From NCBI GenBank assembly GCA_043228905.1, contig JBHGNT010000001.1:1674001-1738000 (forward strand): DNA of 64,000 bases. Direction: 5' to 3'. Of this stretch, positions 1-56,576 are shown one piece after another. Within the stretch, counting starts at the first letter, position 1, and each line of letters starts with the position of its first letter. The position numbers and the translations under genes are program-made. The notes below the pieces were generated by a model. The model ran no database searches. It worked only from the letters and a program-made list of their open reading frames with translations, and was not told the DNA's origin. This DNA is from Azolla caroliniana (Eukaryota > Plantae > Polypodiophyta).

Positions 1-24
1 GCATCAACATCTGGATCATCGGAG

Positions 25-2801: not shown

Positions 2802-3582
2802 TGTCGGAATTCCGTGCTCAGCCACAACCGAGGAACAGGATCGATTCACAGAAAACGGGAAATACAACAATGCACGAAAAACAATAGAGAGAAGGGTACA
2901 CTGGATGTTTTACGTGGAAAACCCTAAATGGGAAAAACCACGGGAGTGCAAGACTCCAACTATCACTATACGCGGGAATGTACAATGGCGAGCTGCAAGG
3001 CGACGACCTTGAGCTCGCTGTCCTCGCCACAGGCGGCGGTATTACACAGAGGCGTCGACCTCTTCCTTCCTCTTTCTCTCTCACTCTCTCTCGGCTGCTC
3101 TCACTTCGCTCCCTCTTAGTGGAAAACAGAAAAATGAGCAACAACATAAACTGTTTGCCCTAAGTCATATTTATACACATATGACTTTCGGGCTATTTAC
3201 AAATATAGCCTCAAGGGCTCTTGGCAAACATATTCACAAATATGTCCCCACATCCGGATCTCCCTCCGGGTACATTCGTCATCCGGCTCCGTAACCGGGG
3301 TCTTCAGCATCCGGCTCCGTAGCCGGGGTATTCATCATCTGGCTCCGTAGCCGGGGTATTCATCATCCGGCTCCGTAGCCGGGGTCTTCATCATCCGGCA
3401 CCGTAGCCGGGGTCTTCATCATCCGGCTCCGTAGCCGGGGTCTTCATCATCCGGCACCGTAGCCGGGGTCTTCATCATCCGGCACCGTAGCCGGGGTCTT
3501 CATCATCCGGCTCCGTAACCGCAATCGGGCTTGCCGTCATTCATCTCCGGACATCCCATCCGGAGGGACCGAAATCCCAACA
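2802..3582 (-). repeat. 3' LTR of the nested Copia
   Basis: Direct repeat of 7698-8478; preceded on the minus strand by the PPT. Confidence 0.98.
3280..3521. repeat. 28-bp tandem repeat (~8.6 copies) in U3 of the 3' LTR
   Basis: Unit CATCCGGC(T/A)CCGTAGCCGGGGT(C/A)TTCAT, period 28. Confidence 0.97.
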
Positions 3583-3592
3583 AACTCCCCCT

Positions 3593-6500: not shown

Positions 6501-7666
6501 GCCGAGATCAGGTTCAATCGGACCTCCGGAACGTGTCGCACATCCTTCAGCAGCATCTTGCATCCGGTTGATGTCATCAGCCACACGTCTCCTATGCCGG
6601 CAATCCGGCATGTGCCTTCATTTCCCATCCGGACACAGCCATGCTCACCGGCTGTGTAGGATGAGAAGTATTTCTTCTCCGGGGTCAGGTGGAACGACGC
6701 TCCGGAATCGACCACCCAGGTCATCTCTACACCGGCAAGGTTCAGCTCCCTCTCTTCGGTAATGAGCATTATCTCTTCTTCACTTGCCGCGAGTGCCGTC
6801 GTTCCTTTCCGGTCCTGCCCTCGCCGATCCGGACCTCTCCGGTCCGTGGCTCCCCGGTATGCACCGTTTCTCTCCGGTGACTTCTTCGAATCGGTGTCGT
6901 CGGCTCCGTTGTCTTTTCGGTAATGCCGACAATTCTTCCGGAAGTGCCCCGGCTTCCCACAGTGGAAGCATGTGGGTCTTCCTCTTGATTGCGACCGGGT
7001 CCCCGACTTCTCCCGTCTTTGCGGACTCCGGTTCCATTGTCTTCCCCGTTCCGATTCGGTAAGCAGCGCCTTCGAGTCGGAGGCCGGTTCTTTATCTCTC
7101 CGACGCGCTTCTTCGTTCAAAATGCTTGTCTTTACCGTTTGTAGAGACAAGTTATCTTCGGTGCAGGAGGTGCTGAGAGTCACCACCAAGTTCTCCCAGC
7201 TGTCCGGCAATGTACACATCAGGATGATGGCTTGCATTGCATCCTCCAACGGGAACTTGATCGCCGCAAGCTGGTTCACGAATCCCATGAACGTGCTTAC
7301 GTGTTCCACCATACTCTCGCCGTCCCGGTACTTGAGGTTCACTATCTTTCTCATCAGGGAGGTCCGGTTCAACGCATTCTTCCTCTCGTAGAGGCCCGAC
7401 AGCTTCCTCCACATCTCATATGCGTTGGTGTCGTTCGCCACGTGTTGTAGGACGCTCACGTCGACGTATTGCCGAATGGTTGCAACGGCTTTCCGGTTCA
7501 GAAGCCTCCACTCCGTCTCAAGTACCCCCTTGGGTATTTCCGACCTGTCGATCGGTTCATACAGGTCCCGAACAATGAGCAGATCCTCCATCTTTATCTT
7601 CCAGTCGGCATAGTTCTGCGCATTCAGCACCATCATCCCCGGCTGCCCGCTGCTGCCGCCTTCCAT
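3593..7666 (-). CDS. Copia Gag-Pol polyprotein, ~1357 aa from MEGGSSG
   Basis: Gag, CFHCGKPGHFRKNC zinc knuckle, protease WVVDSGAS, WHKRLCH, integrase (HTDVC, RADNGGEY, NGLAERMNR), RT (QMDVKTTFL, YVDDML), RNase H (FTDSD, TEAEY, CDSQSA, NGSDMLTK); no stops; first ATG after the PBS is at 7666. Confidence 0.97.
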   Translation of the reverse strand: MEGGSSGQPGMMVLNAQNYADWKIKMEDLLIVRDLYEPIDRSEIPKGVLETEWRLLNRKAVATIRQYVDVSVLQHVANDTNAYEMWRKLSGLYERKNALNRTSLMRKIVNLKYRDGESMVEHVSTFMGFVNQLAAIKFPLEDAMQAIILMCTLPDSWENLVVTLSTSCTEDNLSLQTVKTSILNEEARRRDKEPASDSKALLTESERGRQWNRSPQRREKSGTRSQSRGRPTCFHCGKPGHFRKNCRHYRKDNGADDTDSKKSPERNGAYRGATDRRGPDRRGQDRKGTTALAASEEEIMLITEERELNLAGVEMTWVVDSGASFHLTPEKKYFSSYTAGEHGCVRMGNEGTCRIAGIGDVWLMTSTGCKMLLKDVRHVPEVRLNLISAGRLDDEGYTGSIRNGVMKFSKGSLIVARARKVNTLYLMNSRLCPEELNVAADTAGELWHKRLCHMSEKGMKRLAEDNLIPVKHVHLEKCTDCLAGKQNRTSFHSRPPTRRSAPLELVHTDVCQVETKSHGGAQYFVTFIDDHSRRLWTAPMKTKDQVLSVFKELHARVERESGKKLKAIRADNGGEYRGQFAEYCRSKGIRLEFTVPKTPELNGLAERMNRTIMERVRSMLAHAKLPKGFWAEAMSTATYVINRSPSVPLDGDTPQRVWTGKEVSYRHLKVFGCLAYVHVAKDRRGKLDPKTRPCIFLGYGDDEFGYRVWDPVDKKIFRSRDIIFMEDKTLADWESEKKVKSSKSTGEDQLYEEQSRPARDRLALEDPAEDGEETEPTEEDENDTGTGPDPEMDSDEEESEEPVTEAPERRYPLRERRAPRRFPEPEHVLLTDEGEPESFEEAKHDTQSRRWLSAMQDEMDSLHENHTYELVELPKGKRALRNKWVFKLKPGDAGNPPRYKARIVVKGFQQKKGVDFDEIFAPVVKMTSIRTVLSIAASMDLEVEQMDVKTTFLHGDLEEEIYMQQPEGFEKEGKEHLVCRLKKSLYGLKQAPRQWYRKFDSFMTDEGYHKTQSDHCVFVKKFEGGDSLILLLYVDDMLIVGRDQVKIRMLKKALHRTFSMKDLGPARQILGMHIIRDRKKKQLWLSQEKYVTKVLHRFNMSEARPVGSTLPANCKLSSKQSPKTKAEKEDMMKVPYASAVGSLMYAMVCTRPDIGYAVGVVSRYMSNPGKEHWNAVKWILRYLKGTANVCLRFGSGKPELDGFTDSDMSADEDTSRSTSGYVMTYAGGAVSWQSRLQKTVALSTTEAEYMAAVEAGKEIIWMKDFIRELGIRQEEYRLYCDSQSAIHLAKNAAYHSRTKHIQRRYHWIRERIEDQEFMLTKIHTEENGSDMLTKVLTPDKLEACRKRVGLERHPMPK

Positions 7667-7697
7667 TTTCTGTGTTACCGTCGCTCTGATACCACTT

Positions 7698-8478
7698 TGT
7701 CGGAATTCCGTGCTCAGCCACAACCGAGGAACAGGATCGATTCACAGAAAACGGGAAATACAACAATGCACGAAAAACAATAGAGAGAAGGGTACACTGG
7801 ATGTTTTACGTGGAAAACCCTAAATGGGAAAAACCACGGGAGTGCAAGACTCCAACTATCACTATACGCGGGAATGTACAATGGCGAGCTGCAAGGCGAC
7901 GACCTTGAGCTCGCTGTCCTCGCCACAGGCGGCGGTATTACACAGAGGCGTCGACCTCTTCCTTCCTCTTTCTCTCTCACTCTCTCTCGGCTGCTCTCAC
8001 TTCGCTCCCTCTTAGTGGAAAACAGAAAAATGAGCAACAACATAAACTGTTTGCCCTAAGTCATATTTATACACATATGACTTTCGGGCTATTTACAAAT
8101 ATAGCCTCAAGGGCTCTTGGCAAACATATTCACAAATATGTCCCCGCATCCGGATCTCCCTCCGGGTACATTCGTCATCCGGCTCCGTAACCGGGGTCTT
8201 CAGCATCCGGCTCCGTAGCCGGGGTATTCATCATCCGGCTCCGTAGCCGGGGTATTCATCATCCGGCTCCGTAGCCGGGGTCTTCATCATCCGGCTCCGT
8301 AGCCGGGGTCTTCATCATCCGGCTCCGTAGCCGGGGTCTTCATCATCCGGCTCCGTAGCCGGGGTCTTCATCATCCGGCACCGTAGCCGGGGTCTTCATC
8401 ATCCGGCTCCGTAACCGCAACCGGGCTTGCCGTCATTCATCTCCGGACATCCCATCCGGAGGGACCGAAATCCCAACA
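7698..8478 (-). repeat. 5' LTR of the nested Copia
   Basis: Direct repeat of 2802-3582 with 5 mismatches seen by eye; adjacent to the PBS; TATAAATA on the minus strand at 8064-8071. Confidence 0.98.
8176..8417. repeat. 28-bp tandem repeat (~8.6 copies) in U3 of the 5' LTR
   Basis: Same unit and copy number as 3280-3521. Confidence 0.97.
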
Positions 8479-9665
8479 CCTCCAAGGTGACCTACAGGAG
8501 GAAATCTATATGGAGCAGCCGAAAGGCTTTATGGCATCCGGCCAGGAACATCTAGTCTGCCGAGTCAAGAAGAGTCTACGGCCTGAAACAGGCACCCCCA
8601 CAGTGGTACAAGAAGTTCGACGACTTCATCCAATCGGTCAGCTTCTCAAAGAGCGATGAGGACCACTGTCTCTTCACCAAAACAGCTCAAGACGGGTCTC
8701 CCGTCATCCTTATCATTTACGTGGACGACATGCTACTCTCCGGTCGGCATGCCGGAGAGCTCACCGAACTCGTTCAGGAATTGCGGTTGAAGTTTGCCAT
8801 GAAGGACCTCGGTCCGGCACGACACATACTTGGTATGAAGATTAGTCGGTATCGCGATACACGACAACTTTTCTTGTCTCAAACCGACTACACGGACGTG
8901 TCTTAGAACGCTTCAACATGCAATCGGCCAAGTCTGCTTTGACCCCGCTCCCCATCAACCTTCGGCTATCTCAGCGAGACTGTCCGACATCCGGAGGGGG
9001 AAGATATGAAGTCAGTACCATATGCACCAGTAGCCAGCTCCCTCATGCACGCGATGGTCGCGATACGGCCTGATATTTCTCACGTCGTAGGTGTCGTCAG
9101 CAGATTCATGCACAACCTCGGTCGATCGCACTAGAACGCAATCAAGCATGTGTTCAGATATCTAGTTGGCACAAAAGACCACGGCATTCTTTTTGGCCCG
9201 AACTCAACCTCAGGCATAGTCGGTTACACCAACTCGGACTTCGTCGGCTGTGTGGACAGTCGGAAATCAACAACCGGATATTGTTTCAAATTCGGCAATG
9301 GAGCAATCTCATGGAAGTCAAAACTTCAGGAGTGCACAACCACCTCAACGACCGAAGCGGAATATGTAGCTGCATCCAACGCGGCAAAAGAAGCTCTATG
9401 GCTCGGTCGGCTGGTGCACACGTTTCGACAGGTCGACTCCGACTCGGCTCCAGTTGTCTACAACGACAATCAGGGTGTTGTTGCTTTGTCAAAAAATCCG
9501 GTTCACCACAACGCCTATAAGCATATCGACGTTCGATATCACTTCGTTCGGAACTGCGTCATTTCAGGGAAAATCGGTCTCGAGAAGATATCCACGACCG
9601 ATAATGTCGCAGATGGAATGACCAAGTGTCTTTCGGCGGATCGTTTCCGGTACCTTCGGCACTAG
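8479..9665 (+). pseudogene. Host Copia RT-RNase H (C-terminal part), disrupted
   Basis: Reading resumes after the TSD as QGDLQEEIYMEQPKGF; YVDDML at ~8718-8735; ORF 9150-9665 has SRKSTTGY, ISWKSK, STTEAEY, KHIDVRYHFVR. Confidence 0.93.
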
Positions 9666-9895
9666 ATGGGCGTAACGAAAAATCGATCCGGTTAAAGTCG
9701 GACACACAACACAGGATGGTTTCGAACCACCGACATCGGTTCTCTAAGGATCGGGTTTAACTCTTCCGACCCGACCAATTCGGTCTTCTGTCTTCGGATC
9801 TTGCTGACTCTGACAAAACCGATATGTCCGATAAACCTTGTATATATACCTGTAATTCCTTAAGATAACCCATGTATAAGCCCATTACGGGGGAG

Positions 9896-10186
9896 TGTCG
9901 AATACGAGTGTATAATGGTCGTATTCACATTGTGCCTTTGGACAGCCCATGTTCGGGCTATTTCTGTAAATAGCATAAAGGGCAGTTGCCCTAGGATAGT
10001 CACTATATAAAGTGACTTTGTAACCTTTAGTGAAGGTTGGTTGTCATTTGTAATTGTTGCTATTGGAATATAACGTTTCCTTTGTGCCTCTCTCTTCCTC
10101 TGTGTCTATCTTGCTCATGCATACACAGGTTCTTCTTCAATTCGAATGTTGCTTGTACTTCCGCATTGATGGCCTTGTCCCCAACA
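9896..10186 (+). repeat. 3' LTR of the host Copia (~291 bp)
   Basis: Follows the PPT directly, starts TGTCG, ends CCCCAACA, contains TATATAAA at ~10004; the partner LTR is outside the window so the end is inferred. Confidence 0.8.
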
Positions 10187-10476
10187 CTAACAACTGTACA
10201 CCAATGAATTATTAGATTACCCAAACAAATCATAATATTTGGGTTTTGACCAATAAAATTATAAGGGTCACGTTATGTATTTAAGAAAGTTAAGCAAAAT
10301 GCGGTTGAGTTAGTCAAGAAGATATGGTTGATGCTCCTGCATACTCTAAGAGGTCAATACGAGGCAATAACTGGTAAGCCCAATGTTGTGTTTTGTGAGC
10401 AACAACATTTTCGAGATATTTGGAAAAAGGCAGAGGCCTTCACCTCTTTTAGGGAAATAATAAAGTGGAGATACGC

Positions 10477-11213
10477 TGTCGTGAAGAATTTCAGCCAGAG
10501 GCGGAAACCGGGAAACATTGGCTACATCGGCGGGGTGCAGCGTGTGTACGCACCCATGTACATTTAGTGTGGATATCGAGGGCGCCTTTATGGCGCCGAA
10601 GAGTAGTCAAGTCGGGACAGACGATCCCATGTAAGTCGGGATTTATCCCACATTGTAATGCATCCCTCTCCTTGTTTTATAAAAGGAAGGGAACGCCCTT
10701 TGTGAAAGGGTTGCCCATTTTGCATTAGAGGGTATACCGTTAGGTTTAGAGTTAGTTTCTTCTTCTTCCCCTTCGTGTTCGCTTAGGGTTTGCTTCAGCT
10801 CATCTCCTACGCAAGACCCCGCTCGACGCGACGAGCCCGTGAGCTCCCCGACCGGCGGCTTGGCAGCTGACAACTATTGTAACCTACCTTGGTCCGGCTC
10901 GAAGCCATATATATGCGTTTGCGTTTGTCTGTGTATATTCGCGTCTATGTTGGTGTCGGGTGTTTCCCCCTTCCTGTGTTTTCTGTACATAAGGGCGTGA
11001 TTCAGGTCGGGCTCTATGTGTGTGTGTGTGTGTGTGCGTGTGTGTGCGTGAGTTGGTGTTAAGCTCTCTCTCTCTCTCTCCCTTTGGTTGCTTCCGGTGT
11101 GTTTCCGGGATGCCCCAGAAACAGTGAAGCACGACCTCCTACGCTCCATCACTCCCTAGTCCAAGACCCCCGTGGTCCCGCCTTTCTCCACGCACAAGCG
11201 TAACAACGCGACA
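10477..11213 (+). repeat. 5' LTR (737 bp) of the gag-only element
   Basis: Direct repeat of 14439-15256; TATAAAA at ~10678; contains short AT, TG and CT microsatellites. Confidence 0.95.
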
Positions 11214-11217
11214 TCTT

Positions 11218-11235
11218 TGGTGAACCCGACGTGAA
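11218..11235 (+). promoter_or_regulatory. Primer-binding site complementary to the 3' end of tRNA-Trp
   Basis: TGGTGAACCCGACGTGAA is the reverse complement of the plant cytosolic tRNA-Trp 3' end as recalled (...TTCACGTCGGGTTCACCA), 4 nt after the LTR. Confidence 0.88.
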
Positions 11236-11250
11236 AGGAGGCAAGGGAGG

Positions 11251-12459
11251 ATGGAGTCGGAAGACGACGACCTTGCGGAGATGGTGGCCGAAGTGGTGTT
11301 GGAGTCGGCACGAGTGGTGATGAGGCGAGAAGCAACGCAACAAGCGGTTGAGCGAGTGGTCGAAAGAGTCGGCCGTTTCAACGGGGACAAAGTCCCATCT
11401 TACTTGGAAGCCTACAACGCGGAAATGGAGGAGTGTGGCGTAGACGAGGCGTTGAGGCTGGAGTTCTTCTGTCGGGTCGTAGCTGTCCGGATGCATGCGG
11501 AAGTAAAGGAGCTCCGTGAGGCTCATGGTTCGTGGGAGGTCTTCGAAGAGGCGCTCCTGAAGGCATACGGAGGACGACGGAAGAGCCGGGGACGGCACGA
11601 CTTCGACCAGTGGGTAGCATCGGCAAAGACCCACCGGGGCGCTGCCAAGGCGTTTCGAGAGTTCGAGCGGCGGCTTGCTCGGCTCCCGGAACGGGAACAA
11701 GGTTTGGTGGGGGCGGACAAGGTCCTATTGTTCGTCAGGTCGATCGACCGAGCGGAACCGGAGGCCATCGGGATTGAGCTCGAAGACGATGATGGAGCGA
11801 ATGGGCTTATGGAGGACTAGTCGAAGGTCGAAAGGGTGTGCCAACGGCTGGACAACGAGCGAGCCGAGAAGGCTAAGAGGAAGGTACGCGACGGCGTGCC
11901 ATCACAGCGGGAAGAGGCCGAACGGCAAAAAGAGTCGGCGAGGGTCGGCGTTGGGGCCAGGATTGCGGAGGTGTACGCAACTCTCGAGGCGATGCTCGAG
12001 GAAGAGGAAAGACGGGGGCCGCAAGCCGAGACTGAGAAGACGGACTTGCCCCACGTGACGGCGGAAGATCGATACGTCGGTACCACGGGAGAGGGTGTGG
12101 AACGAAACGCCCTCTCGACTTGCGGAGAAAGAACGGCCAAGGACGAGGCCGAGATACAGATCGCGGAACCGGAACATTGGGACCAGCGGTTTCGGGCGTG
12201 TCAGCCCGAGATCCCGGTCATTGAAGAAGCAAGACCAGACGGGGCATGCGCGATCGATAAGAAGACGACCGCCGACCACGAAGAGTCGGTGGCTACGGAC
12301 AAGGGCGTAAGACGAACGAGCGATTCTTTGTGTCTTCCCACACTTGCTCTTGGGACGATGGCAGTCGGGCCCGAGTGCCCACGTGAGTCCCAAGCGGAGG
12401 AAGGCGGCGGCGATAGGCCAAGAATCACTGGCGAGACGATATGGGGAAGGAGCGGATGA
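11251..12459 (+). pseudogene. Gag-like ORF with one internal stop (TAG 11818-11820)
   Basis: ORFs 11251-11820 and 11836-12459 share a frame; RFNGDKVPSYLEAY...SWEVFEEALLKAYG resembles retrotransposon capsid/Gag; starts 15 nt after the PBS. Confidence 0.72.
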
Positions 12460-14438
12460 AAGACCACGGACCCGATTCCGGAGAACTCGGCATTCGGGCC
12501 CGTATGCCCATGTAAGACCGAGGAGATCGATGGCGGTACCGAGGACTCATGGCACGATGCCAGCAAAGACGGATGGGAAACGGCCTGCGAGGAGGCCGAG
12601 GACAGAAGCGGCACGAGGAAATCGGCATTTCGATACGGGTGGAGCGTGATCCGGTCGTGGATTTTTCGATCGGGGCCGGATTCGACATGAAAGTGTCGAA
12701 ACGGAAGAGGGTGCGGGACAAGCCGCCCTCTTTTACATGGGGAGAAAGACCGATCGGGCGAAGGTGAGAGATGGAAAGAGAATGAAAGCCAGTCCAAGGA
12801 GTTCCTTACACTGATCCAGCTGTCGGCCCGAGTGCCGGCGTGAGTCCTATACGAGAGAGCGGTGGCGACAGGAGAACGGGACTCGGCATGCCGAAAAGGA
12901 CGACCCGGGACAGGGTCGGGAAGACAAATCGGAGGCCTACGGATGATCCTTCACACCGGTTCTAGAGACTTCGGCAGTCGGCGACGCGGTCGACGTAAGA
13001 CCAAGATACTGACGGTGGCGGCGAGGTGATGAAGGCAAGGGCGGAAGGAAGTCTGGTCCTACGGGATCCCCATACTTAACCAGAGACTCCGGCCGTTCGG
13101 CCAACGTGGCAACGTAAGACCGGGGGAGAAGGAAGGTGGCGGCGAGAAACGGGACCCGACTACGCGAAAGACACGAGGAGAGTCCGTGAGGGACTCAAAC
13201 AAAAGACACCCGAATTATGGCAGGCATAGAAACGGAGTCCGGTCCTATGGGACCCTCACACCGATCCGGAGACCTCGGCTGATCGGCCAACGCGGCAACG
13301 TAAGACCGATGGAGAAGGACGGTGGCGGCAAGGAACGGGACCCGACAACACGAGGTTTCGGAAGGAGCCGGTAGGGGCAAACACGGGGAGGTGTGTCAGG
13401 CCGGAAAGGTACACCTGGGACAGAACAAGGGTCTCGCAAGTGGCCATCGCGGGCCGGATTGAAGCGTGACTATGGGACGGTGTACGGCGCGGGCGGGGCC
13501 GAACAAAGGAAGCGGAAGGCGGCACAAGGGAGGTGCCGAGAACGAGGTGACAAGTGCCTAGTGGACTGCACAGGGTCAGAGTCAGGGGATGGCAAGAGAG
13601 GCCGGAGGAGGATCCTCCACACTCGCTTCGTAGATCTCGGGAGCTCCGTCGAAGTTGCGAAGACTGACACGGCAAGCCCGGGGTGACAAGTTAGTGGGGG
13701 CGAGGGGAGGACGGCAAATGGGAGACTCAGAACCTGTTGCAGCAGCACGAAGACGGGAAGGGCCAAGCGGGCTACTACGAGTGTTCCTCGGATGCAAAGG
13801 ACACCGGTATGCGGGTGAGCGGCGATGCACGATTTGGTCGGAAAGGGGGCCGACAAGGAGTGCAACACAGGCAGTGCCAATCAACGGATGAGGGTATGTG
13901 GCACACGGAGGTGCCAGAGCAGAAAGGCGAGCGCGGAGATAGGTTGCGCGGTTCGGAAGTAGCGCGGAGAAGGCCGGAAAGGGGATCCTCCACACCGTTC
14001 TGGAGACCATGGCGGTTCGAGCCGACGCAGTGATGTAAGACCATGGAGAAGGAAGGTGGCGGCGAGAGGACGAGGGCAACACGAAACGACAAGGGACGAC
14101 AATCAGGGCGACACGAATGATCAATGGAGGCCAAGCGGGCCACTACAGGCATGCCTCAAGCGGAGGAAATCGGGCATACAACGGGAGCGGGGCGTTCATA
14201 CGGCCTAACAAGGGCCAACGGAAGGACGCGTACTACAGAGATCGTGGCAGAGGACCCATCGACGGGTCGAACGAGCCTACGGGGAGGTAAGCGCGAAGGA
14301 AGAATCGAAGCCGACGGATCAAACCAGCAGCGAGCCGAGATGCGGATCACGGGAGACCAGTTTCTCACCGGCCGAAATCTCTCACCCTTCAACTAGATTT
14401 GGCACGTACCGGTGGACATGCGGTTAGGTGGGGGCGGA

Positions 14439-15018
14439 TGTCGTGAAGAATTTCGGCCAGAGGTGGAAACCGGGAAACATTGGCTACATCGGCGGGGTGC
14501 AGCGTGTGTACGCACCCATGTACATTTAGTGTGGATATCGAGGGCGCCTTTATGGCGCCGAAGAGTAGTCAAGTCGGGACAGACGATCCCATGTAAGTCG
14601 GGATTTATCCCACATTGTAACGCATCCCTCTCCTTGTTTTATAAAAGGAAGGGAACGCCCTTTGTGAAAGGGTTGCCCATTTTGCATTAGAGGGTATACC
14701 GTTAGGTTTAGAGTTAGTTTCTTCTTCTTCCCCTTCGTGTTCGCTTAGGGTGTTTGCTTCAGCTCATCTCCTGCGCAAGACCCCGCTCGACGCGACGAGC
14801 CCGTGAGCTCCCCGACCGGCGGCTTGGCAGCTGACGACTACTGTAACCTACCTTGGTCCAGCTCGAAGCCGGAAATGTATTCTTCTTTTATATATATATA
14901 TATATGCGTTTGCGTCTGTCTGTGTATATTCGCGTCGATGTTGGTGTCGGGTGTTTCCCCCTTCCTGCGTTTTCTGTACATAAGGGCGTGATTCGGGTCG
15001 GGTTGTGTGTGTGCGCGC

Positions 15019-15256: not shown

Positions 15257-17542
15257 ACGCTCAACCAAGATTGCTTTTTCCACCCCTTGTTTTGGAAGGA
15301 CCCTGCATGAGGGCTTTTGCTACTCGACATGTTAGTTGATGTGGGTATATTAAGGGTTATATTTGACTGTAGGACTTCTTTGCAGTCTTTGGGCAGCTTT
15401 CCATTAAAAATTAAATAAATACAAAGGTGAATCTTTATTTAAAAAATAAATAAAAGTAAAGTAAAATAAAAATTCAAGGGTCACCTCAAGTGACTAATGT
15501 TTGCTCATATCTCTTGAGTCTTTCCTCTACCTATTCTTTATTTATAAAACTAGCTCATCACATTAACTTTCACATTCTCATCTTATGTTGAAGTAGAGGT
15601 GTTCAAGGCTAGTATTTAGAGTGCAAAAGAAGTGATTGAAGAGGGAGTTCTAGTTAATAAAAAGCATGGAATGTTTGAAAGAGTTTGATAAGGCAATCTC
15701 AATCAAACCACACAATTTATAGTTAATATAGAGTGCTTTAGAGGTATTAAAATGGTTTTGATATAACTCAATATTGAAGTACTTATTTTTCCTCGCATTT
15801 ATTTTGTAGCTCGAGTAGCAAAGGTTTTCACATCAAGAAGCTTTCACATTGTCTTATACACTTAACATTCAATCACACATATCACAATGTTGAGGAAATC
15901 CTCAATACTCTCAAGCAATCAAACATGAGTAATGTTTATCAATAGAGAAACACCTTTGAGGAATTGCTTGTATTTGCAAACAAATGAACTCAATCTAGCT
16001 CATTTTTAGGGAAGATGGAGATCATGTAATATGGATGTATATTGTTCCTGTCATTTTGGGAAACAATGTCTGCTAACTTTGTTTGTGGACTCTGTTGCTA
16101 CAAATGTTGGTGGTATAGGTTACATTGCATGCTTAGTTGCAAGTTGGGAGGAATAGACCATAAAAATCTAGGAGATATGGTGCACACAAATCAAATCAGC
16201 TATGATGAGAGCACAATGGAGTCGGTTGGTATACTCCTTTATCTAACACAACTTTTGTATTTCTTATGATTTTATAATACCATGGCGTATCTCTTTAGAG
16301 GGGGGGGGGGAACATGTCTATTTATATTAGTGGTTAAGTGTGTGTAAAATTAGGTTTAACCAACATAGTATCAATGTAATTCTCTTTAAATTAGTCTATA
16401 ATTCAATCATATAATATATGTTTAAAGGCCCTTGACAAGTCCTATAAAGTTAGTTTGATCATGAATTTTATTTTGAACAAAGTCGATATGCATTGGAGGT
16501 GCATGTGGAGTATCGACTCTTCAAGGAGAACCCACACATATATATATTGATTCCATGTTGGCTAAAACTAAAGTTACTGTAAAGGTTTGGCATAAAACTT
16601 TACAACCCATTGATTCTATAAGCGCTATGTAATCTAAAATTCCTAAACTTGTTTTATACTAGAAACTTTGAATTTTAACTATCTCACTGCATCTCGATAT
16701 TGGTGTGTTTATGGTGAAAAAAGTGGTTTGAGGGAATCGTAAAACTATGCAATTTCCACTACATATAGAATACTTTAAAAGTGTTTAACGACACAATATT
16801 AGAACAACACAAATTCCGTTTAATATAGAATGCTTTAATGACATTTTCATATATCTTGTCTCAAGAATATTGTCTTCTTGCATTTATGGCACAATATTTG
16901 TTGCTTTCTAGTTTGAGCTTTGAAGCTGGAGCATGAACAATCATGATATTCTCTTACACACAAACTTAGAAGCATGCTCATGAGTCCTAACAATATTGGC
17001 AAAAATATTCAATATCTTCCAAAAAAGCAAAATTGATAGACAATAACATGGTTGTGAAGATCAAGTTGTACTTGTAACTTGCCAAAAGAAAAAGGAATTT
17101 AGGTCGACTTAGCTCACAAGCAAATTTCATGATTGAACTAAAGGTATAAGTTCTCTCGGGGCCTCAAAAATAAACAAAATATTATGTGAAAGATCAAAAT
17201 GTGATTGGATAGACTGAAGTAGGACTACACGGATAGGATATGTAGCATAAACAAATTGATTTTAAAGGTCTTGAATAAAACATTAGCAAACCTAGATTCT
17301 AGCTTTACATGTTTTTTGTTGAAATAAAAAGCTTTGGCCATTTAGGCAAAATTTTAGAATTCTCGCTCTATATCTACATAAACAACATAGCACTGGCGGC
17401 AATCTATATAAACAGTGTAACACTTATAGGATAAAGGAGTGTAACTTCATGATCAGAACTTAGGAGAATATTTTGATGCTCTCTAGTCCTCTGTTACGTA
17501 TCAGGGTCACTAGTTGTGCTAAGGAGTCTAAACTTTGAAGCC

Positions 17543-18073
17543 ATGGAAGAGATTGGCATTGACAACCCACGAGAGTTTGTTGTGAGGACTGATGGTATGG
17601 CATTGCAGAAGGAGGAGGGGTCAGTGGTGGGCGAGTTGGTGGGGAAGCATATCATCTACACATACGAGAATGGGTGGGAGTATGAGGTGTACTACAAGAA
17701 CAAGAGCACCATCGACTATAGGGTGCTCCGTGGGATGGTGGCTGGCCGCTACGTCAAAGGACAGCGCGTTCACATTCGGCGCTTATCGGGGGCATCATGT
17801 CCAATGTTCATGGTTAGCTGGACGGAGCCCACGGGAACTTGTGTCGTCCAAGTGGTGGACTTGCATAGGCGGTCCATGGACACTACGGCTTTCTTCCCAC
17901 ATTGGGTGGCCAAAGAACCCTCGAAAACAACATGTTTCCAAAACCACCACCTCCCCATCATCATTACATATCGTGATATTGGGCCAACCTACCCCATCTG
18001 CGTGGTCAATGAGACTGGGTTCATACACACCCTCCTAGATAGTGGCCCCAACAATGAGCTCCTCATTTCTTAA
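17543..18073 (+). CDS. padC: Phenolic acid decarboxylase (bacterial PadC-like), intronless, 176 aa
   Basis: GKHIIYTYENGWEYEVYYKN..TIDYR...GMVAGR...VSWTEPTGT...FFPHWV...CFQNHH...TYP matches the Bacillus PadC motif series; catalytic YxY, Arg and Glu present; TATA-like CTATATAAA at ~17404. Confidence 0.95.
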   Translation: MEEIGIDNPREFVVRTDGMALQKEEGSVVGELVGKHIIYTYENGWEYEVYYKNKSTIDYRVLRGMVAGRYVKGQRVHIRRLSGASCPMFMVSWTEPTGTCVVQVVDLHRRSMDTTAFFPHWVAKEPSKTTCFQNHHLPIIITYRDIGPTYPICVVNETGFIHTLLDSGPNNELLIS

Positions 18074-19382: not shown

Positions 19383-20040
19383 ATTGAGCACTTCCTCAAA
19401 ATTTCCATTCTCAGCATATCCTATAATCAGTGCATTCCAAGAGACATGTTCTTGGATTGAAAGCTTGTTAAATACTACTTGTGCCTCGGTAAGTTACCCA
19501 CATTTAGCATACATATCTACCAATGTATTGCCAATGAAATAATCTCTTTCAACTGCTTTTTGTACAATTTCATTGCATGCTAACGTAGCTCTAATGCTAC
19601 CACATGCTTTCGAGTAGCAAACAAGTGTGACAATATTTGGAGGGATGCCCAGTCTTTGCATTTGCTCAAAGAGGGAGAGATATCCATGTTCCACATATCC
19701 TGCAGTCAATATATATCCATGAAATTGCATCTTTCATAGGAAGTTCATCGAAATTTTCCTATGCTGTTGAGAGAAAACCACGTTTGGCATACATATCATT
19801 GACTTGGTATTGGCAATGAAGGTCTCATTATGTAACCCTTTCTTCACAATATCGTCATATATTACACTACCTCGATTGATGTCTCTGGTATCACCACAAT
19901 TTTTCAAGTGAGAAACAAGTACAAATGTATTTAGCGAGATATTATGTGTTTGCATCTCCTTCATGAGGTTTAGAGCTTCGTCGCCATGCTCATGTTTTGC
20001 ATAACCAGTGATTCATGCAGTCCATAGGATGACATCTCTT
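19383..20040 (-). pseudogene. PLS-class PPR pseudogene fragment
   Basis: Fragments TFVLVSHLKNCG, AGYVEHG, PPNIVTLVCYSKACG, IGNTLVDMYAKCG and VSWNALIIGYAENG separated by frameshifts and stops. Confidence 0.85.
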
Positions 20041-20887
20041 GACTCTCATGTTGTCACATGGGGGTATTATAGGTATACGGTATATGCATGTATTCACTGG
20101 TATTAGCTACACATGGGGGGTAATATAGGGGCATGTGTCATATAAAACTTAGGAGTACTCCAATTAAGACAATGACTTATGGTCCTACTCAAATGAGTTA
20201 CAAGAGGGGGTTAATCTAGGGGAATGTGTCATAGCCAACTTATAGCTCCAACTTCAAAGGGTCGAGTATTGTTGATTAAAGTTCTTTAGACATAATATCT
20301 AAAACTAGGGATGTGGGGTCCAAGAAGGGCGGAGCCACCAAGGGAGGACAACAGCCGACCCATTGCTAGACACAATACTAAAGGTTCCAAGACAAGGTCA
20401 TTAGGAGTAGGAAAACACACAAATGGGCACTTTAGTGGCAATCATGCAAGTAATAGAATCTCACCAATCTCGACAAAGTGCAAATTGTTCGGACAATGCT
20501 CCCACAAATGCATGTGTATCTAGAAAACTTAAGGATCTTTAGTTGGACCATAACACACTAGTCTATGGTAAACCTAAGATCGTCTTCCGACTAATGGAAT
20601 TACTCTAGCCTTCACTAGTCAATAATCACTTAGGTATGTATAATAACTAGGGACGATATGCTTCTTGATATTGGGGGCGATGTGGCATGCCACAAAACGT
20701 GTATGTAGAATGCTTTTCGGTAAATTTAAATTTTGGACGGGAAAAGGTCACGTGTGTGCGGCCATGGGACTCATACCAGTAACCAAACCAATGAGTGCAA
20801 AAGAACAAACATTTAGCCTGTTGTTGGGATCTCGACGATGACATGTTAGTTAGTCTTAAGAAGAAGCAGACGAAGAAGAACTAGAAT

Positions 20888-23233
20888 ATGGCTGTTAATG
20901 TAGCTCACAGATATGGACATAGGTCACAGATATGGCTTAACAGATGGCCTTACCCTAACCCTGTCAACGAGGGAGAAGATGTAAGAATCACGCTGCAGAG
21001 AAAACAACATTTGGATTCTGGTAGCTTCCACGTGATCGCTAAAAAAGAAGAGGAAGAGGCACAGCATCCTGATGATCGAGCTTGTATTACCTCTCTTGTC
21101 GATAGAAAAACTACATCCCAAGCTCTATCCAAGTCCTGCAGAAAGGAGGTAAGTGTATGCATCGAAGATGCCATTTCAAGGTTTGATCGTGAAGAAATAA
21201 GTAAGCCTTCTTGTTCTGTTTCTGATTTCATTCATCTATTGCAACAATGTAGAAGAAGCAAAAGTTCTGACTATGCACACCGTGTATATATAACTGCTCA
21301 GAAGGGGGGTTTTCTATCCCATAGAGATGTGGGGAACTATATTGTGCCTATGTTGATAGAATGTGGAAATGTAGTCGATGCGAAAAATGTGTTCGTGAAC
21401 ATGCCTTACAGAAATGTACATTCTTGGACCTCATTGATATCATCTTATATTGAATTAGGCCAACATGAGTATGCTTTCAATTTGTACCACAAGATGCAAG
21501 ACAGCGATAACGTTTACCCTAATAGTTACACGCTCGTGGCTTTATTAAAGGCATGTTATGGAGTAGAAGATGTGGTGCTGACACATATTGAGGTCACTGA
21601 AAAAGGATTTGAAAAAGATCTCTTTGTTGGCACCTCGTTGATTGATGTATATGCAAAATTTGGTTCTTTGCCAGATGCTCACGCCATGTTTCTTAAACTT
21701 CCAGCTCGAAATATTGTCTCTTGGACGGCTTTGATATCGGGGTATGCTGAACATGGACCCAATTTAGAAGCATTGAAATGCTTTGAAGACATGATATCAC
21801 ATGGGATTTCTCCAAATGCTGTGACATATATATGTGTCTTGAAAGCTTGTGGAAACTCTAGATCTCTCTGCCATGGCCGAAATATGCAAATGGAAATTGT
21901 CCAGAAAGGCCTGGAAGGAGACTATGTTATTGGAAGCACCTTAGTGGACATGTACGTGAAATGTGGATCGATGGTAGAGGCTCGCAGAACTTTCGATAAG
22001 CTTATGGTTCGAGATATTGTGTCATGGAATGGATTGATTTCGGGTTATGTGGAGCATGGTCCTGATCAAGAAGCATTGAAATGCCTTGAACAAATGCAAT
22101 CAGAAGGAACATTGCTAGATGATGTTACATTTGTTTATACCTTGAAAGCTTGTGGGAATATGGGTGCCATAGATAATGGCTGGAACCTCCATTTTGATGT
22201 TATATGTAAGGGTCTAGAAAATGACTCCTTTATTGGAAGCACTCTAGTCGATATGTATGCCAAATGTGGCCTCGTTTCAGATGCTAAAAAAGTCTTTGAA
22301 AATATCTCAGTTCGTGATATTGTATCATGGAATGCAATCATAAAAGGATGTGGCATGAACCATGATGGAAAGAATGCTATCCGTTATTTCGAAGACATGC
22401 AAGAAAGAGATGTAAAGCCAGATGGTGTTACATTTACATGTGTTTTAACTGCATGTAGTCATGCAAGCTTAGCCCTTAAAGGACGTGATATGTTTGATGC
22501 AATGACAAATGTATATCATATTGTTCCAACAATGGATCATTACAATTGTATGGTGGATATACTCTCACGAACAGGGAAAATTTATGAGGCAATTAGGTTC
22601 ATCAAATCTATGCCATGTTCACCTTCGAGTGATATGTGGACAGCATTGTTGAATGCCTGCAAAAGCTATGCTGAGATAGAATTAGGATTTAAATGCTTTC
22701 AAGAGCTCCTAAGAATGGATTCAGAATGGGCGGTTCCTTATGTCCTCATGACTAATATCTATACAAATGCCGGGAAGTTCGAGGATGCGCGTAGAATCGA
22801 GGAGATGAGGAAACGAGCAGGGGCTAAAAAGAAACCAGCATGTGCTTTAATAGAAGTAAATAAAGAAGTTCATGAGTTTGTTGTGGGCGAGAACCAAAAT
22901 AAAGACATATCAGCAATGCTCGAGAATCTCAACTCTCGTTTAGAGAAGGAAGGATGTATTCCTAATCTAGACTTGGTTTTAGGTCTACTTTCAGATGATG
23001 CTAAAGAATCTGCATTGTGTGATCATGCTGAAAAACTGGCAATTGCGTTTGGGCTCCTAAACACACCATCTGGTCATACTTTACGAGTCACGAAGAATAT
23101 GAGGATGTGTACTGATTGCCATAGTAGAGCAAAGGCCATATCAAAGATGGAGAGGCGGGAGATAATTGTGAGGGAGATATATCAAGTGCATCGTTTCAAG
23201 GACGGTTTTTGTTCGTGTGGGGATAAATGTTGA
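20888..23233 (+). CDS. PLS-class PPR protein with E1-E2 and a DYW:KP (KPAxA) deaminase-like domain; candidate organellar U-to-C RNA editing factor
   Basis: 781-aa intronless ORF; P-L-S triplets; KKKPACALIEV, CDHAEKLAIAFGL, KNMRMCTDCH, HRFKDGFCSCGDKC. Confidence 0.95.
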   Translation: MAVNVAHRYGHRSQIWLNRWPYPNPVNEGEDVRITLQRKQHLDSGSFHVIAKKEEEEAQHPDDRACITSLVDRKTTSQALSKSCRKEVSVCIEDAISRFDREEISKPSCSVSDFIHLLQQCRRSKSSDYAHRVYITAQKGGFLSHRDVGNYIVPMLIECGNVVDAKNVFVNMPYRNVHSWTSLISSYIELGQHEYAFNLYHKMQDSDNVYPNSYTLVALLKACYGVEDVVLTHIEVTEKGFEKDLFVGTSLIDVYAKFGSLPDAHAMFLKLPARNIVSWTALISGYAEHGPNLEALKCFEDMISHGISPNAVTYICVLKACGNSRSLCHGRNMQMEIVQKGLEGDYVIGSTLVDMYVKCGSMVEARRTFDKLMVRDIVSWNGLISGYVEHGPDQEALKCLEQMQSEGTLLDDVTFVYTLKACGNMGAIDNGWNLHFDVICKGLENDSFIGSTLVDMYAKCGLVSDAKKVFENISVRDIVSWNAIIKGCGMNHDGKNAIRYFEDMQERDVKPDGVTFTCVLTACSHASLALKGRDMFDAMTNVYHIVPTMDHYNCMVDILSRTGKIYEAIRFIKSMPCSPSSDMWTALLNACKSYAEIELGFKCFQELLRMDSEWAVPYVLMTNIYTNAGKFEDARRIEEMRKRAGAKKKPACALIEVNKEVHEFVVGENQNKDISAMLENLNSRLEKEGCIPNLDLVLGLLSDDAKESALCDHAEKLAIAFGLLNTPSGHTLRVTKNMRMCTDCHSRAKAISKMERREIIVREIYQVHRFKDGFCSCGDKC

Positions 23234-25018
23234 GATAACTCTCCAACACAACCTTAAGCTTGGGCTCAAAATATGTCATCTTGACTTGTAGATTATGCTC
23301 TCAAAGCCAGTTGAGATGAAAAAACTTGTGCTCAAAAGTTTTATTGTATGGACACATTACAGTTGATGTATAAAGTCGAAGGCAACATAAAAAAGCCATT
23401 CAAATTAAAAAACAAGTCTGCCAATGGTTGTTGGCACTACCAGTTTTGTCATTCCTTGGCCAACATCTAAGATGGCTTGACCAAGTATTAATTATCAATC
23501 TTCAAAGAAAGGATAATTAGAAAAAAATAAAGGTATGTATTTATACGTTCTTCAAATTGTGAAGGCCTACCTCATGTTACCAAACGAAAAAGAGGATACC
23601 ATTTATTGCTAGGGTGGAATTTAATGGATGGTTATTGGGAAATATTAGAGTCTGAACAATGATGCTGACACAAACAGAAATTAATTCTACAATCTTTTTA
23701 CGAAAAAGAAAAAAACGATAATTTGTGCACATGTTTTTGAATCACAGAAGAAACATAAGAGGTGTGTTTTGCATTAGGTTGAACTGTATATATGGTCACA
23801 TAAAAGAGAAAACAATGAATTGAAAGGAGTAAAATGGAAAGGGAATCAATTGACAGTAAAAATGAGAAAACAAATGATGTAAAATACAGCATTTGGCCAC
23901 AAGGCTTAAATAACCAAAACATTATTTCATTGATCTGAACTGGTAAACATTGTGTGAATTCTATCCATCTTATGAGCAGTGTGATTGCAGCCATTCCTTT
24001 ATTAAAGTTTCATGTGTAGCAAAAAAGGTAATGATTTTCTGTAGTGCTTTTCATAAGTGACACCAACCCTTCACAAATTTGTGAACTTCTTTCATAAACC
24101 TTAGAACAATTCCTGAGAAATCTTTCTTAGAGTTTATGTGATCCATGGCAGTTATTCAAGACATCCTCTATGGATTTGGGATTAGTATGAAATGCAAATC
24201 CTTGCATGTGATCTATCTACATAGTAGCCCTTTATGATATGCTTTCCTCAATGCCTTTTCTTTAAATACCATTAATACGATAGAGATGATCCTTGTACAA
24301 CGCATCATACATTATACCACAACAGCAAGAGTCAATAACAATGCCATTTGGTTAGACAACATTGGAGGCCAACTCCATTGCCGGTCAACAAGGCACATAT
24401 ATATGTATGCAGTAAGTCCAAAAACATTTAGATTCAATTGTATTGTTGCATTGCCAAATTCCATTCTCAATGTTTTTGGCAAACATTGCATAGTTGAGGC
24501 ATCCTAACATTGTTATACTTAATACATCTAACTATTAAATCCATTATTCTCAAGCTTGTTTGCAGTATGCAACACATCCGGAAACTAGTATATTGGCTAC
24601 ATATATCATATCAATTGTTATATTCAATACATCTACCAATGTATCATAAATCCAGTCCAATTCAAGTTTTGTAAAAGTGAGAGGAATTTGGTTCCCATGA
24701 ATGCCACCTTTTATACGCTGAACCCCAAATAATGTCATACCTAGCTCCTAGTATAGTGTAGATCCAAACATTTTAAGGGGGGTCACAAATGTTGAATGAC
24801 ATGTATCCCGTATATTACACTTTAATTAGATTGGACATATCATATATATCTCACATATCAACATTGTACTACACATTAGTTAGTCTAGATTAGACTACAC
24901 ATGTATTAATCTAGATATGAATTCTGGTATCACTGTAGTGCTTTTCACATACAATCACATATAATTGTGCGTTTTCATAAAAAATAAAAATGTATCAGAA
25001 CAGGAAACTCACTGAGGA

Positions 25019-27904
25019 ATGTTTCATGGTTACTGTGAACGAAAGGTGTTGTTCAGTCTCAAACACAAAGCTTTAAGGTTCCATATCCCTTTTGTTTCTT
25101 TTGTTTCATCTCTTCTACCCCCAGGAGAAGATAATATAATAAGCTCGATAAATAAAACCATCTCTGTCCTATCATCGATAGAAAACCACATTCATCGCTT
25201 ACAAATTTGCAAAGAGAAAAAAGACCCATCACATGTTAGGCATGTGTATTCACTTGTATGCAATGATGGGCTAGATTCACAGCATGCAATTGGTGGCGAC
25301 CTAGTGTTGGCCTTCGTGTTGTCAGGTAACGTGGTGGATGCCCACCGTCTTTACAAAAAACTGTGTATTCAAAATGTCCGCCTTTGTACATCCCTTATGT
25401 GGGGTTATCTGTGGTTTGGTGAAAAACGTATGGTTTTTTGCCTTTACGAGGAAATGATGCATCAAGAAGGTATCATGACCCCCAACACATATACTTTTGT
25501 AGCCCTTCTGAGTGCTTGCAACGACCTTCAAGATGCAGAAAATGGTAGAATGATTCATGGTCACATTGTACAAATGGGTTATGATGGACATCCTTTTGTT
25601 GGTAGTATGTTGCTTGACATGTATGCAAACCTGGGTTTACTTTGTGAAGGATTGCAAGTTTTCTACAGGATGTCAATCCGAGATGTTGTAGCATGGAGTA
25701 CCCTTATTGCCGGATATGCCAAAGAGGGTCTTCTAAGTGATGTGATGATCTTTTTTAACCGTATGCAATTGGAAAATATCTCACCTAATGTGGTCACTTT
25801 CCTTGCCACTTTGAAAGCATGCAATAATGCGAGGAATATAGACAAAAGCCGAGAATTCCATAATGAGATTGTACAACGGGGTTTTGAAACCGAGATTGCA
25901 ATCGGTAATAATCTGGTAGATATGTATTCCAAAAATGGCTCAATTGATGAAGCAAAAAAGGTTTTCAATTCATTAATAGTTAAAAATGATGTGGCATGGA
26001 GTGCATTGATTGGAGGATATGCTGAAGCTGGTTTAGATCTTGAATCCATGAGTTGTTTTTATGAGATGCATAACGAAGGCATTTGTATCAATATGCATGG
26101 GTTTTCTTGCACATTAAAGGCTTGTGGAAACCTCGAGGCAAGAAATAAGGGCCAAGAAATACATATGTCAATCACAAAAGTAGGATTTGATGAAGAACTG
26201 TATGTAGGAAATGCTCTAGTTGACATGTATGCGAAATGTGGTTGGATTTTTGAGGCAGAAAGAGTCTTTGATAAACTTGCATATCGTGATGTAGTATCGT
26301 GGAATGCTCTAATGACCGGATATTCAGAATATGGACTTCTAGGGAACCTATTAGACTGCTTTCAGAAAATGAAAGCAGAACAGGTTACTGGAGATCCGAT
26401 CACATTTGCCTGCACTCTAAAATGTTGCGGTAACATGGGATCTCTACAAAATGCTAGAGAGATTCATGTAGAAGTTATGTATAAAGCGTTTGATGGAGTT
26501 ATGCTAGTTATTGGTGCATTAGTTGATGTGTATGCAAAGTGCGGCTCACTAGCTGATGCACAAAAAATATTTGACAGTTTACCAACTCAAAGCATAGTAT
26601 TGTGGAATAGTCTAATAGCTGGATATGCCAATCAAGGCCATGTAACGGTAGTGCTTGAAAGCTTATGCCAAATGCAAGCACAACGTGTCATGCCAAACCA
26701 CTCCACATATGTATATGTGGTAAAAGCTTGTAGCAACATAGGATCCGTAGATCGAGGGCGAGCAATACACATTCAAATTGAGCTGCTTGGATTGCAGAAA
26801 GATGATCATCTTTGCGTCATGCTAGTGGAGATGTATGCAAAATCAGGTCTTCTTGAGGAAGCATTAGAAGTATTTAACAATATTGAAAATAGAAAAGATG
26901 TGTTATCTTGGAATGTTCTTATTGACGGATATGCTGAACATGGACCAAATCAATCTGTTATTGATTGTGTGAAACACATGCAACAAGACGGTGTTGTTCC
27001 AGATATGTTCACATTTTCTTGCATTATCAAAGCATGCAGTAACCTGGGTTTAGTGGATATGGGCAAAGACTTCTATATAGAAATCATATGTAAGGGGTTT
27101 GAAACTGATATTGTCATAGGAACCACATTGATGGATATGTATAGGAAATATGACTTGCTAGCTGAAACTGAAGAAGTCTTCAAAAAATTGCCAAAAGACA
27201 ATGTCATAACATGGAATACTGCCATTTTAGGCTATGCGGAATGTGGATATGGGGAAATGGCTTGGTATAGTTTTGAAGATATGGGGAAGAATTGTGTCTC
27301 AGGTGATGCAACCTCTTATGTAGGTATTCTCAAAGCGTGTATTATTATGGCAGCTGTAGAGAAGGGAAAACTAATACATGAGGATATTGTAGTGAAGGGA
27401 CTGGAAGGGAATATTTTTGTTGGAAGTGCTTTGATTGCCATGTATTCAAAATGTGGGAAGCTTCCTGAAGGTCGGGCGGTTTTTGAGAAGTTTCCCTCCC
27501 GAAATGTTGTAATGTGGAATTCAATGGTGAAAGGCTATTGTTTGAACCATCAGTGTGAAATGGCCATGAAACTTTTCCAAGCCATGCAAGATCAGGGTGT
27601 CCAACCTGATGCTACCACATTCACATGTTTAATCACGGCTTGTGGTCGAATGAGCCTTGTGGACAAGGGCCGGGTTTTTTTCAATCATATGGGAGAAATC
27701 TATGGCATTAATCCAAATGTAGATCACTTTAGTTGCATGGTTGATCTTTTGGGTCGATCAGGAAATTTATCTGAGGCAGAAAAATTACTGCAAACTATGC
27801 CATGTTATCCAGCTAGGGATGCTCAGCGAGCTTTGCTTACAGCTTGCAAAACATTCAAATCATCCAAAATGGGAGAAAGATGCCATGAGCAACTTGTATA
27901 TTAA
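25019..27904 (+). CDS. PLS-class PPR protein (961 aa) ending in E1, no DYW domain
   Basis: Many P-L-S triplets (e.g. VGNALVDMYAKCG, DVVSWNALMTGY), P2-L2-S2 (DHFSCMVDLLGRSG), stops after RALLTACK; plausible N-terminal organelle transit peptide. Confidence 0.93.
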   Translation: MFHGYCERKVLFSLKHKALRFHIPFVSFVSSLLPPGEDNIISSINKTISVLSSIENHIHRLQICKEKKDPSHVRHVYSLVCNDGLDSQHAIGGDLVLAFVLSGNVVDAHRLYKKLCIQNVRLCTSLMWGYLWFGEKRMVFCLYEEMMHQEGIMTPNTYTFVALLSACNDLQDAENGRMIHGHIVQMGYDGHPFVGSMLLDMYANLGLLCEGLQVFYRMSIRDVVAWSTLIAGYAKEGLLSDVMIFFNRMQLENISPNVVTFLATLKACNNARNIDKSREFHNEIVQRGFETEIAIGNNLVDMYSKNGSIDEAKKVFNSLIVKNDVAWSALIGGYAEAGLDLESMSCFYEMHNEGICINMHGFSCTLKACGNLEARNKGQEIHMSITKVGFDEELYVGNALVDMYAKCGWIFEAERVFDKLAYRDVVSWNALMTGYSEYGLLGNLLDCFQKMKAEQVTGDPITFACTLKCCGNMGSLQNAREIHVEVMYKAFDGVMLVIGALVDVYAKCGSLADAQKIFDSLPTQSIVLWNSLIAGYANQGHVTVVLESLCQMQAQRVMPNHSTYVYVVKACSNIGSVDRGRAIHIQIELLGLQKDDHLCVMLVEMYAKSGLLEEALEVFNNIENRKDVLSWNVLIDGYAEHGPNQSVIDCVKHMQQDGVVPDMFTFSCIIKACSNLGLVDMGKDFYIEIICKGFETDIVIGTTLMDMYRKYDLLAETEEVFKKLPKDNVITWNTAILGYAECGYGEMAWYSFEDMGKNCVSGDATSYVGILKACIIMAAVEKGKLIHEDIVVKGLEGNIFVGSALIAMYSKCGKLPEGRAVFEKFPSRNVVMWNSMVKGYCLNHQCEMAMKLFQAMQDQGVQPDATTFTCLITACGRMSLVDKGRVFFNHMGEIYGINPNVDHFSCMVDLLGRSGNLSEAEKLLQTMPCYPARDAQRALLTACKTFKSSKMGERCHEQLVY

Positions 27905-51632: not shown

Positions 51633-56576
<4,944 letters not shown>

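Follow-up and report, generated by a model that had tools for sequence, protein, structure and literature searches.

DYW:KP domains, found at the C-terminal end of pentatricopeptide repeat (PPR) proteins, are confined to hornworts, lycophytes and ferns, and depart from the DYW:PG type in the N-terminal box, the surroundings of the HxE signature and the last triplet, most of them also being without the xHP motif (PMC9478123). Synthetic KP domains carry out U-to-C conversion, for which HAE, CxxC and Lys88 are needed (PMC9478123, PMC11845758), and reverse editing has been reproduced solely with consensus designs stalling at a crosslinked intermediate, no native enzyme having been paired with a site (PMC11332814). 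Here we describe a gene at positions 20888-23233 of a 64,000-nucleotide stretch of the Azolla caroliniana genome (assembly GCA_043228905.1, contig JBHGNT010000001.1, positions 1,674,001 to 1,738,000 of the forward strand), the whole of which we refer to as the window. The locus is an intact, nuclear, intronless gene of a leptosporangiate fern for a PPR protein with a DYW:KP domain, a clean and well-preserved native example of a known large family that introduces neither a new kind of system nor a new principle. By analogy with the synthetic proteins, we propose that its product is probably a PPR-DYW:KP factor for site-specific RNA editing in organelles, working from U to C at one site shared among ferns.

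The designer PPR-DYW:KP proteins, including the fern consensus KP6 as well as KP7 (PMC9478123, PMC11845758), have in common with the Azolla protein a 133-residue domain, the KP box, the absence of xHP, the HAE and CxxC motifs, Lys88 and a tail other than DYW, as well as the same P2-L2-S2-E1-E2 module ahead of the domain. The Azolla protein differs from them in being native and in possessing its own PPR tract. Relative to KP6, it departs at five of the six direction-tuning positions (64, 113, 116, 119 and 133, with Leu at position 6 in both), features TKNM instead of TKNL beside Lys88, and ends in DKC rather than in an aromatic-ending tail such as DMF. The DYW:PG editors (consPPR-DYW, 9kfx; OTP86, 7o4e/7o4f; DYW1, 7w86) exhibit the same fold, zinc sites, catalytic Glu and active-site Lys (K915 of OTP86), and follow the same four-nucleotide rule from the S2-read base to the edited one, whereas the Azolla protein has lost or replaced the PG box, SHP, the Ser of HSE and the DYW tail, carries five substitutions at the interface, and would be expected to catalyse the reverse reaction. 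The KPAxA box and HAE are likewise found in the DRH and GRP proteins of hornworts (Gerke et al. 2020, as cited in PMC9478123). These two types constitute subclades of their own that are specific to hornworts and keep DRH or GRP as a conserved tail, and the KP domains of ferns and lycophytes cluster separately (PMC9478123). The same paper bears out two premises of an earlier first-pass annotation of the locus, namely that KP variants occur in no plants other than hornworts, lycophytes and ferns and that designer KP proteins perform U-to-C editing (PMC9478123).

Gene structure and class of the DYW domain

The complete coding sequence (20888-23233, forward strand; 781 codons plus stop) was taken from the list of open reading frames (ORFs); it begins with ATG and yields a protein of 781 amino acids (aa) ending in ...CSCGDKC. 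Its start is fixed, barring an upstream intron, since an in-frame stop precedes the ATG by 6 nt and the first 120 codons contain no further in-frame Met, and the sequence can be considered intronless because its end-to-end alignment with PPR-DYW proteins is free of intron-like gaps. Pfam searches with the 781-aa protein returned PPR families (E 1e-52 to 1e-59), E_motif (3.3e-13, aa 594-656) and DYW_deaminase (5.9e-31), in agreement with an architecture in which an array of 13 PLS-type PPR motifs leads into E1, E2 and a DYW domain of 133 aa. The first 109 residues (20888-21214) are devoid of PPR motifs and of Pfam matches, are poorly conserved among orthologues, and presumably combine an organelle-targeting presequence with a variable linker; the composition of the first 27 residues, with zero acidic side chains and several Arg/His, gives a hint of such targeting. 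The PLS-class PPR tract (aa 110-580; 21215-22627) was delimited by motif parsing, by the Pfam PPR families and by alignment to 9kfx and to PLS9-PPR 5iww. It is followed by the E1 and E2 helix-turn-helix motifs (aa 581-648; 22628-22831), which were identified by Pfam E_motif, by four helices in a structural model and by superposition on E1-E2 of 9kfx, and then by the DYW:KP deaminase-like domain (aa 649-781; 22832-23230), as indicated by Pfam, its KP features, a higher KP than PG profile score and the fold of the model.

To assign the domain to a class, DYW domains were cut from 120 protein matches and aligned. Eighteen of these matches are in the same state as the query, with an xPAxA-like box, a 3-residue deletion, HAE and a length of 131-133 aa, and all the species-named ones among them are ferns; the remaining matches have PG, SHP, HSE and DYW. 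In-house profiles, distinct from the published hidden Markov models (HMMs) of Gutmann et al. 2020, were built from 14 KP domains (the four closest relatives being excluded) and from 81 PG domains, and the query scored 213.5 bits against the KP and 162.7 bits against the PG profile (+50.8). After masking of the diagnostic columns, which comprise the box, the tail, the middle residue of HxE and the region of the indel, the scores were 189.8 and 157.2 bits (+32.6). In leave-one-out scoring, labelled KP domains ranged from +22.5 to +55.2 and PG domains from -24.5 to -53, and the query falls within the KP range. Furthermore, a maximum-likelihood tree of the masked columns places the query in a clade (19 tips, support 0.84) made up of KP domains alone, where it groups with a transcript-derived protein (P0001) and with proteins of Adiantum (P0002) and Ceratopteris (P0003) with a support of 0.988. 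The first-pass annotation had named the DYW:KP class and proposed an HMM comparison as the check, and both the in-house profiles and the tree agree with it.

An AlphaFold model of the E1-E2-DYW segment (mean predicted local distance difference test score, pLDDT, 88.6) superposes best on 9kfx (template modelling score, TM, 0.88; root-mean-square deviation 2.4 A), with the DYW domains of OTP86 (7o4e/7o4f) and DYW1 (7w86) coming next. The features that define PPR-DYW:KP proteins are all present, namely a PLS array ending in P2-L2-S2-E1-E2, HxE(x)nCxxC with a second zinc site, KPAxA, a domain of 133 aa without xHP, HAE and Lys88, while the four hallmarks of PPR-DYW:PG proteins (PG box, SHP, HSE and DYW tail) are all absent and the PG profile scores 33-51 bits under the KP one. 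The assignment is thus made by profile and phylogeny and not by motifs alone, the nearest proteins being from ferns. Overall, membership of the DYW:KP class is supported by the published sequence criteria (PMC9478123, PMC11845758), by the in-house profiles and by the tree.

Individual residues of the domain were numbered from the K of KP and compared with the best solved relative, the synthetic DYW:PG editor 9kfx (E 1.5e-184). Relative to the latter, KKEPGCSWIEV becomes KKKPACALIEV, a 3-residue gap opens at SHP and HSE turns into HAE, with both CxDCH and HxFKDGxCSCGD retained. The first-pass annotation had listed the KKKPACALIEV replacement, the loss of SHP, HAE, an intact CTDC, HRFKDGFCSC as second zinc site and a DKC end, every one of which is recovered in the 9kfx alignment and the domain count, and together these features cannot be accidental. 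By these same means, the KPACA box that takes the place of the PG box maps to 22832-22846, and HAE to 23024-23032, where His65 binds zinc, Ala66 stands for the Ser of DYW:PG domains and Glu67 is catalytic; in the alignment designated A1 the His and the following Lys of this region are invariant and the Glu nearly so. The active-site lysine, Lys88 (23093-23095), was located by position count as the K of VTKNM in a nearly invariant column of A1, and its counterpart in synthetic KP proteins is needed for U-to-C conversion (PMC11845758, PMC11713852). CTDC (23108-23119), located by the alignments and the domain count, contributes the catalytic-zinc ligands Cys93 and Cys96, and the second zinc site continues into the tail as H120-x-F...C127-S-C129-G-D131-K-C133 (23189-23230), of which the H, both C and the D are invariant in A1. 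All zinc ligands as well as Glu67, Lys88 and Arg91 are intact in the domain.

The domain owes its length of 133 aa without xHP to a 3-residue deletion relative to all PG domains. In OTP86, the equivalent of Lys88 is K915, which forms a pair with the catalytic Glu, and residues H837-G891, immediately ahead of the His that binds zinc, make up the gating domain (PMC7611903); the missing SHP therefore lies inside the N-terminal part of the gating domain, in keeping with the first-pass annotation. At the other end, the residues that form the PPR-DYW interface of 9kfx (R595, F596, H598, Y609 and W610) read Q, V, R, K and C in the Azolla protein (DYW residues 115-133, 23174-23230), and the same five positions are also altered in other fern KP domains. 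From these comparisons, the interface substitutions look like a feature of the KP class, in which the docking of the deaminase on the PPR tract may differ from that in PG editors.

As for the tail, KP domains of the aligned set end in DMF, DLF, DRF, DSF, DIF, DLY, DRH or DFS, and the three closest orthologues in DNE, DNG and DI, so that Asp alone is invariant and the last two residues vary. The DKC terminus pointed out in the first-pass annotation is present but uninformative, given that tails vary among the closest orthologues and among KP domains generally, and a special role for DKC or its final Cys was rejected for the same endings of these orthologues.

Transcript-like contigs, assembled from runs of closely related species that are guessed to be RNA, extend over approximately 20824-23763 on the forward strand. 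They comprise two contigs of run X17 (about 20851-22285 and 22343-23433) and one of run X14 (about 21026-23763), the ends of which fall within about 30 nt of those limits, and the RNA-like runs leave the flanks at 20122-20765 and beyond 23825 without coverage. In DNA run X1, which bears the same species label, one contig spans the entire 4.8-kb stretch and shows 4 differences. No gene-specific joints were detected: the joints listed are cross-matches among PPR repeats and are present in the DNA run too. This pattern is consistent with an mRNA that is not spliced and measures roughly 2.6-2.9 kb, the library type of the runs being guessed and not on record. The P0001 orthologue, for its part, lies on a 3.3-kb contig of mRNA-like layout.

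Predicted RNA specificity and conservation of the code among ferns

Parsing of the PPR tract yields a degenerate L motif (aa 110-145) followed by S-P-L-S-P-L-S-P-L-S-P2-L2-S2, with motif lengths of 31/35-36/32-36 aa. The fifth and last residues of the motifs are, in order, S NN, P TN, L VD, S TN, P TN, L ID, S SD, P ND, L VD, S SD, P2 ND, L2 TT and S2 NS, a list identical to the one that had been read by eye in the first-pass annotation. In the PPR code, Asn at position 5 stands for a pyrimidine and Ser/Thr for a purine, while a last Asp denotes U or G and a last Asn C or A. The pairs T(S)N, NS and ND have been assigned to A, C and U, respectively (PMC12733224). Application of the code predicts the target 5'-Y-A-n-A-A-n-G-U-n-G-U-n-C-3' at positions -16 to -4, with about 10 specified bases, and in a solved editor the edited base is located 4 nt after the one read by S2 (PMC13324415). 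Among some 1,000-2,000 editing sites, such a motif would be matched perfectly by chance about 0.01-0.02 times. The same motif, with the edited base 4 nt after the final C, had been put forward earlier and agrees with the parse and with both papers (PMC12733224, PMC13324415).

The exact protein has no match in the protein or contig collections searched. Over the C-terminal 222 aa, its closest relatives are the transcript-derived P0001 (75%), GOP47_0029549 of Adiantum capillus-veneris (P0002, 73%) and KP509_21G054700 of Ceratopteris richardii (P0003, 73%); beyond the fern matches, lycophyte, gymnosperm and angiosperm proteins are PG-type and at most 48% identical. The fern orthologues P0001-P0003 have the same motif order, specificity residues and orthogroup features of the DYW domain (TKNM and V/I-R-E-x-Y-Q-V-H), and differ from the Azolla protein in their tails, in an overall identity of 61-68% and in the N-terminal region, which is longer in the latter. 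Each of them is annotated as a hypothetical protein, and a literature search for papers assigning targets to fern KP proteins found none.

P0001 and Adiantum P0002 each have the specificity residues of the query at 17 of 18 positions, and the Ceratopteris model P0003, which is truncated, has them at 9 of 9, the single change among these orthologues being Thr to Ser in one S motif, with A specificity kept. The rest of the PPR tract is 61-63% identical to the orthologues. In P0004, the next relative and one at paralogue level, the code is retained at 10 of 18 positions. At a background identity of 62%, the nominal probability of at least 17 matches in 18 is ~0.002, a figure that is weaker in reality since code positions use few residues. 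Because the code is conserved while the proteins are only ~62% identical, this comparison of sequences suggests that the orthogroup has likely kept one RNA target across ferns.

Editing direction and alternative functions

In the mechanism that we favour, the protein would be imported into the chloroplast or the mitochondrion, as its family would lead one to expect, and its PPR tract would read one RNA base per motif through the fifth and last residues, over positions -16 to -4, with E1/E2 holding positions -3 to -1. The DYW:KP domain would then act on the pyrimidine that follows the S2-read base at a distance of 4 nt, and, if synthetic KP2, KP3 and KP6 are a guide, the reaction would run from U to C, with Lys88 attacking C4 of the uridine beside the Zn/Glu67 centre. 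Since the specificity residues are conserved in orthologues of at least 3 other ferns, the factor would most likely serve one editing site common to these species. The native U-to-C editase that had been proposed from the sequence thus stands as a candidate, for which consensus-designed KP proteins alone suggest the direction.

Several observations weigh against this proposal. The activity data all come from consensus designs, which stall as RNA-protein crosslinks in bacteria, no native DYW:KP protein having been assayed (PMC11332814). The fern-based KP6 also performs C-to-U editing, and one substitution can be enough to reverse the direction in which it works (PMC9478123, PMC11845758). Moreover, the six positions that tune KP6 show a mixed pattern in the Azolla protein (L6, D64, V113, I116, V119 and C133), in which a residue other than Asp at 116 and Val119 are U-to-C-leaning, Val113 is C-to-U-leaning, and D64 and C133 are outside the published variants; the sequence therefore does not decide the direction of editing. 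Conservation at 17 of 18 specificity positions is somewhat overstated by the small alphabet in use there, and the runs taken as RNA are merely guessed to be so and come from related species rather than from the source individual.

An improbable alternative is that the protein edits from C to U, or in both directions, despite its KP-type domain. The precedent is KP6, the fern KP consensus, which performs both reactions in human cells and is converted by three substitutions into an editor of C to U only (PMC9478123, PMC11845758), and Val113 is the residue found both in the C-to-U-leaning KP6 variant and in DYW:PG domains, in the setting of a catalytic centre that is the same as in cytidine deaminases. 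However, Lys88, the loss of which switches KP proteins to efficient C-to-U editing, is retained, and with a residue other than Asp at position 116 and Val at 119 the protein is similar to the U-to-C-leaning variant. Across land plants, furthermore, the KP class tracks the occurrence of U-to-C editing (PMC9478123).

It is quite unlikely that the protein is instead mainly a donor of its DYW:KP domain in trans to PLS proteins that are without one. Such trans action has been proposed for Salviniales ferns, in which PLS proteins far outnumber DYW or DYW:KP domains (PMC12548569), and two potential recipients lie further along the window on the forward strand: a PLS-type PPR ORF of 961 aa that ends inside E1 (25019-27904) and one of 856 aa that ends in an E2-like motif (38463-41033), both lacking a DYW domain. 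Nevertheless, a full-length tract of 13 motifs with a conserved, specific code is unlike the short donors of the DYW1/DYW2 type, the two neighbours are just 35-43% identical to the DYW:KP protein and are not linked to it by any functional evidence, and proximity of PPR genes is common in so large a family. That the gene is an inactive or decaying copy, the product of which binds RNA without editing it, is very improbable: the five substitutions at the 9kfx interface (R595, F596, H598, Y609 and W610 to Q, V, R, K and C) and the unconserved C-terminal tail could be read in this way, but these substitutions are common to other KP domains, the 781-codon frame is unbroken with all zinc ligands, Glu67, Lys88 and Arg91 kept, several ferns retain orthologues in which the code is preserved, the domain is modelled with confidence, and transcript-like contigs exist.

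Returning to the U-to-C factor that we favour, it is conceivable, if rather doubtful, that the orthogroup represents a compact native enzyme that carries U-to-C conversion through to the end and lets go of its RNA, whereas the synthetic KP proteins stall as crosslinks. Residues peculiar to the orthogroup near the active centre and the PPR-DYW interface, namely Met90, Val113, Ile116, Val119 and a tail that is not aromatic, might contribute to such release. In Ceratopteris, edited RNA is not crosslinked (PMC11332814). Should it behave in this manner, the enzyme and a single target conserved among ferns would together be the first native pair for reverse editing, ready to hand. Being short, intronless and intact, with a clean, fern-conserved code, the gene also lends itself to a native assay and to tests of co-evolution against fern editomes, and the conserved code makes target assignment feasible given organelle data.

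Neighbourhood in the window

The two DYW-less PPR ORFs downstream of the gene are 37-39% identical to each other, and a search downstream of both for a remnant of a DYW domain found none. On the basis of their 35-43% identity to the DYW:KP protein and of the missing remnant, we rejected the possibility that these neighbours are recent tandem copies.

Just upstream of the PPR gene, a 185-aa ORF (17516-18073, forward strand) matches phenolic acid decarboxylase (PF05870, 8.4e-52). Between the two lies a high-copy repeat (19806-20037), for which the summed contig depth in the DNA run is about 1400 compared with 44 in the single-copy flanks, and which is present in the RNA-like runs too. The first 15 kb of the window (1-15000) form a GC-rich block (0.51-0.60 versus 0.34-0.40 elsewhere) that is retroelement territory. 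A copia-type gag/Pol beta-barrel ORF lies there at 438-1181, and the minus strand carries an ORF of 1376 aa at 3593-7723. Finally, on the far side of the PPR genes, a 196-aa ORF (51633-52223, forward strand) matches the N-terminal 117 positions of HSP70 (7.5e-43) and represents an HSP70 exon or fragment.

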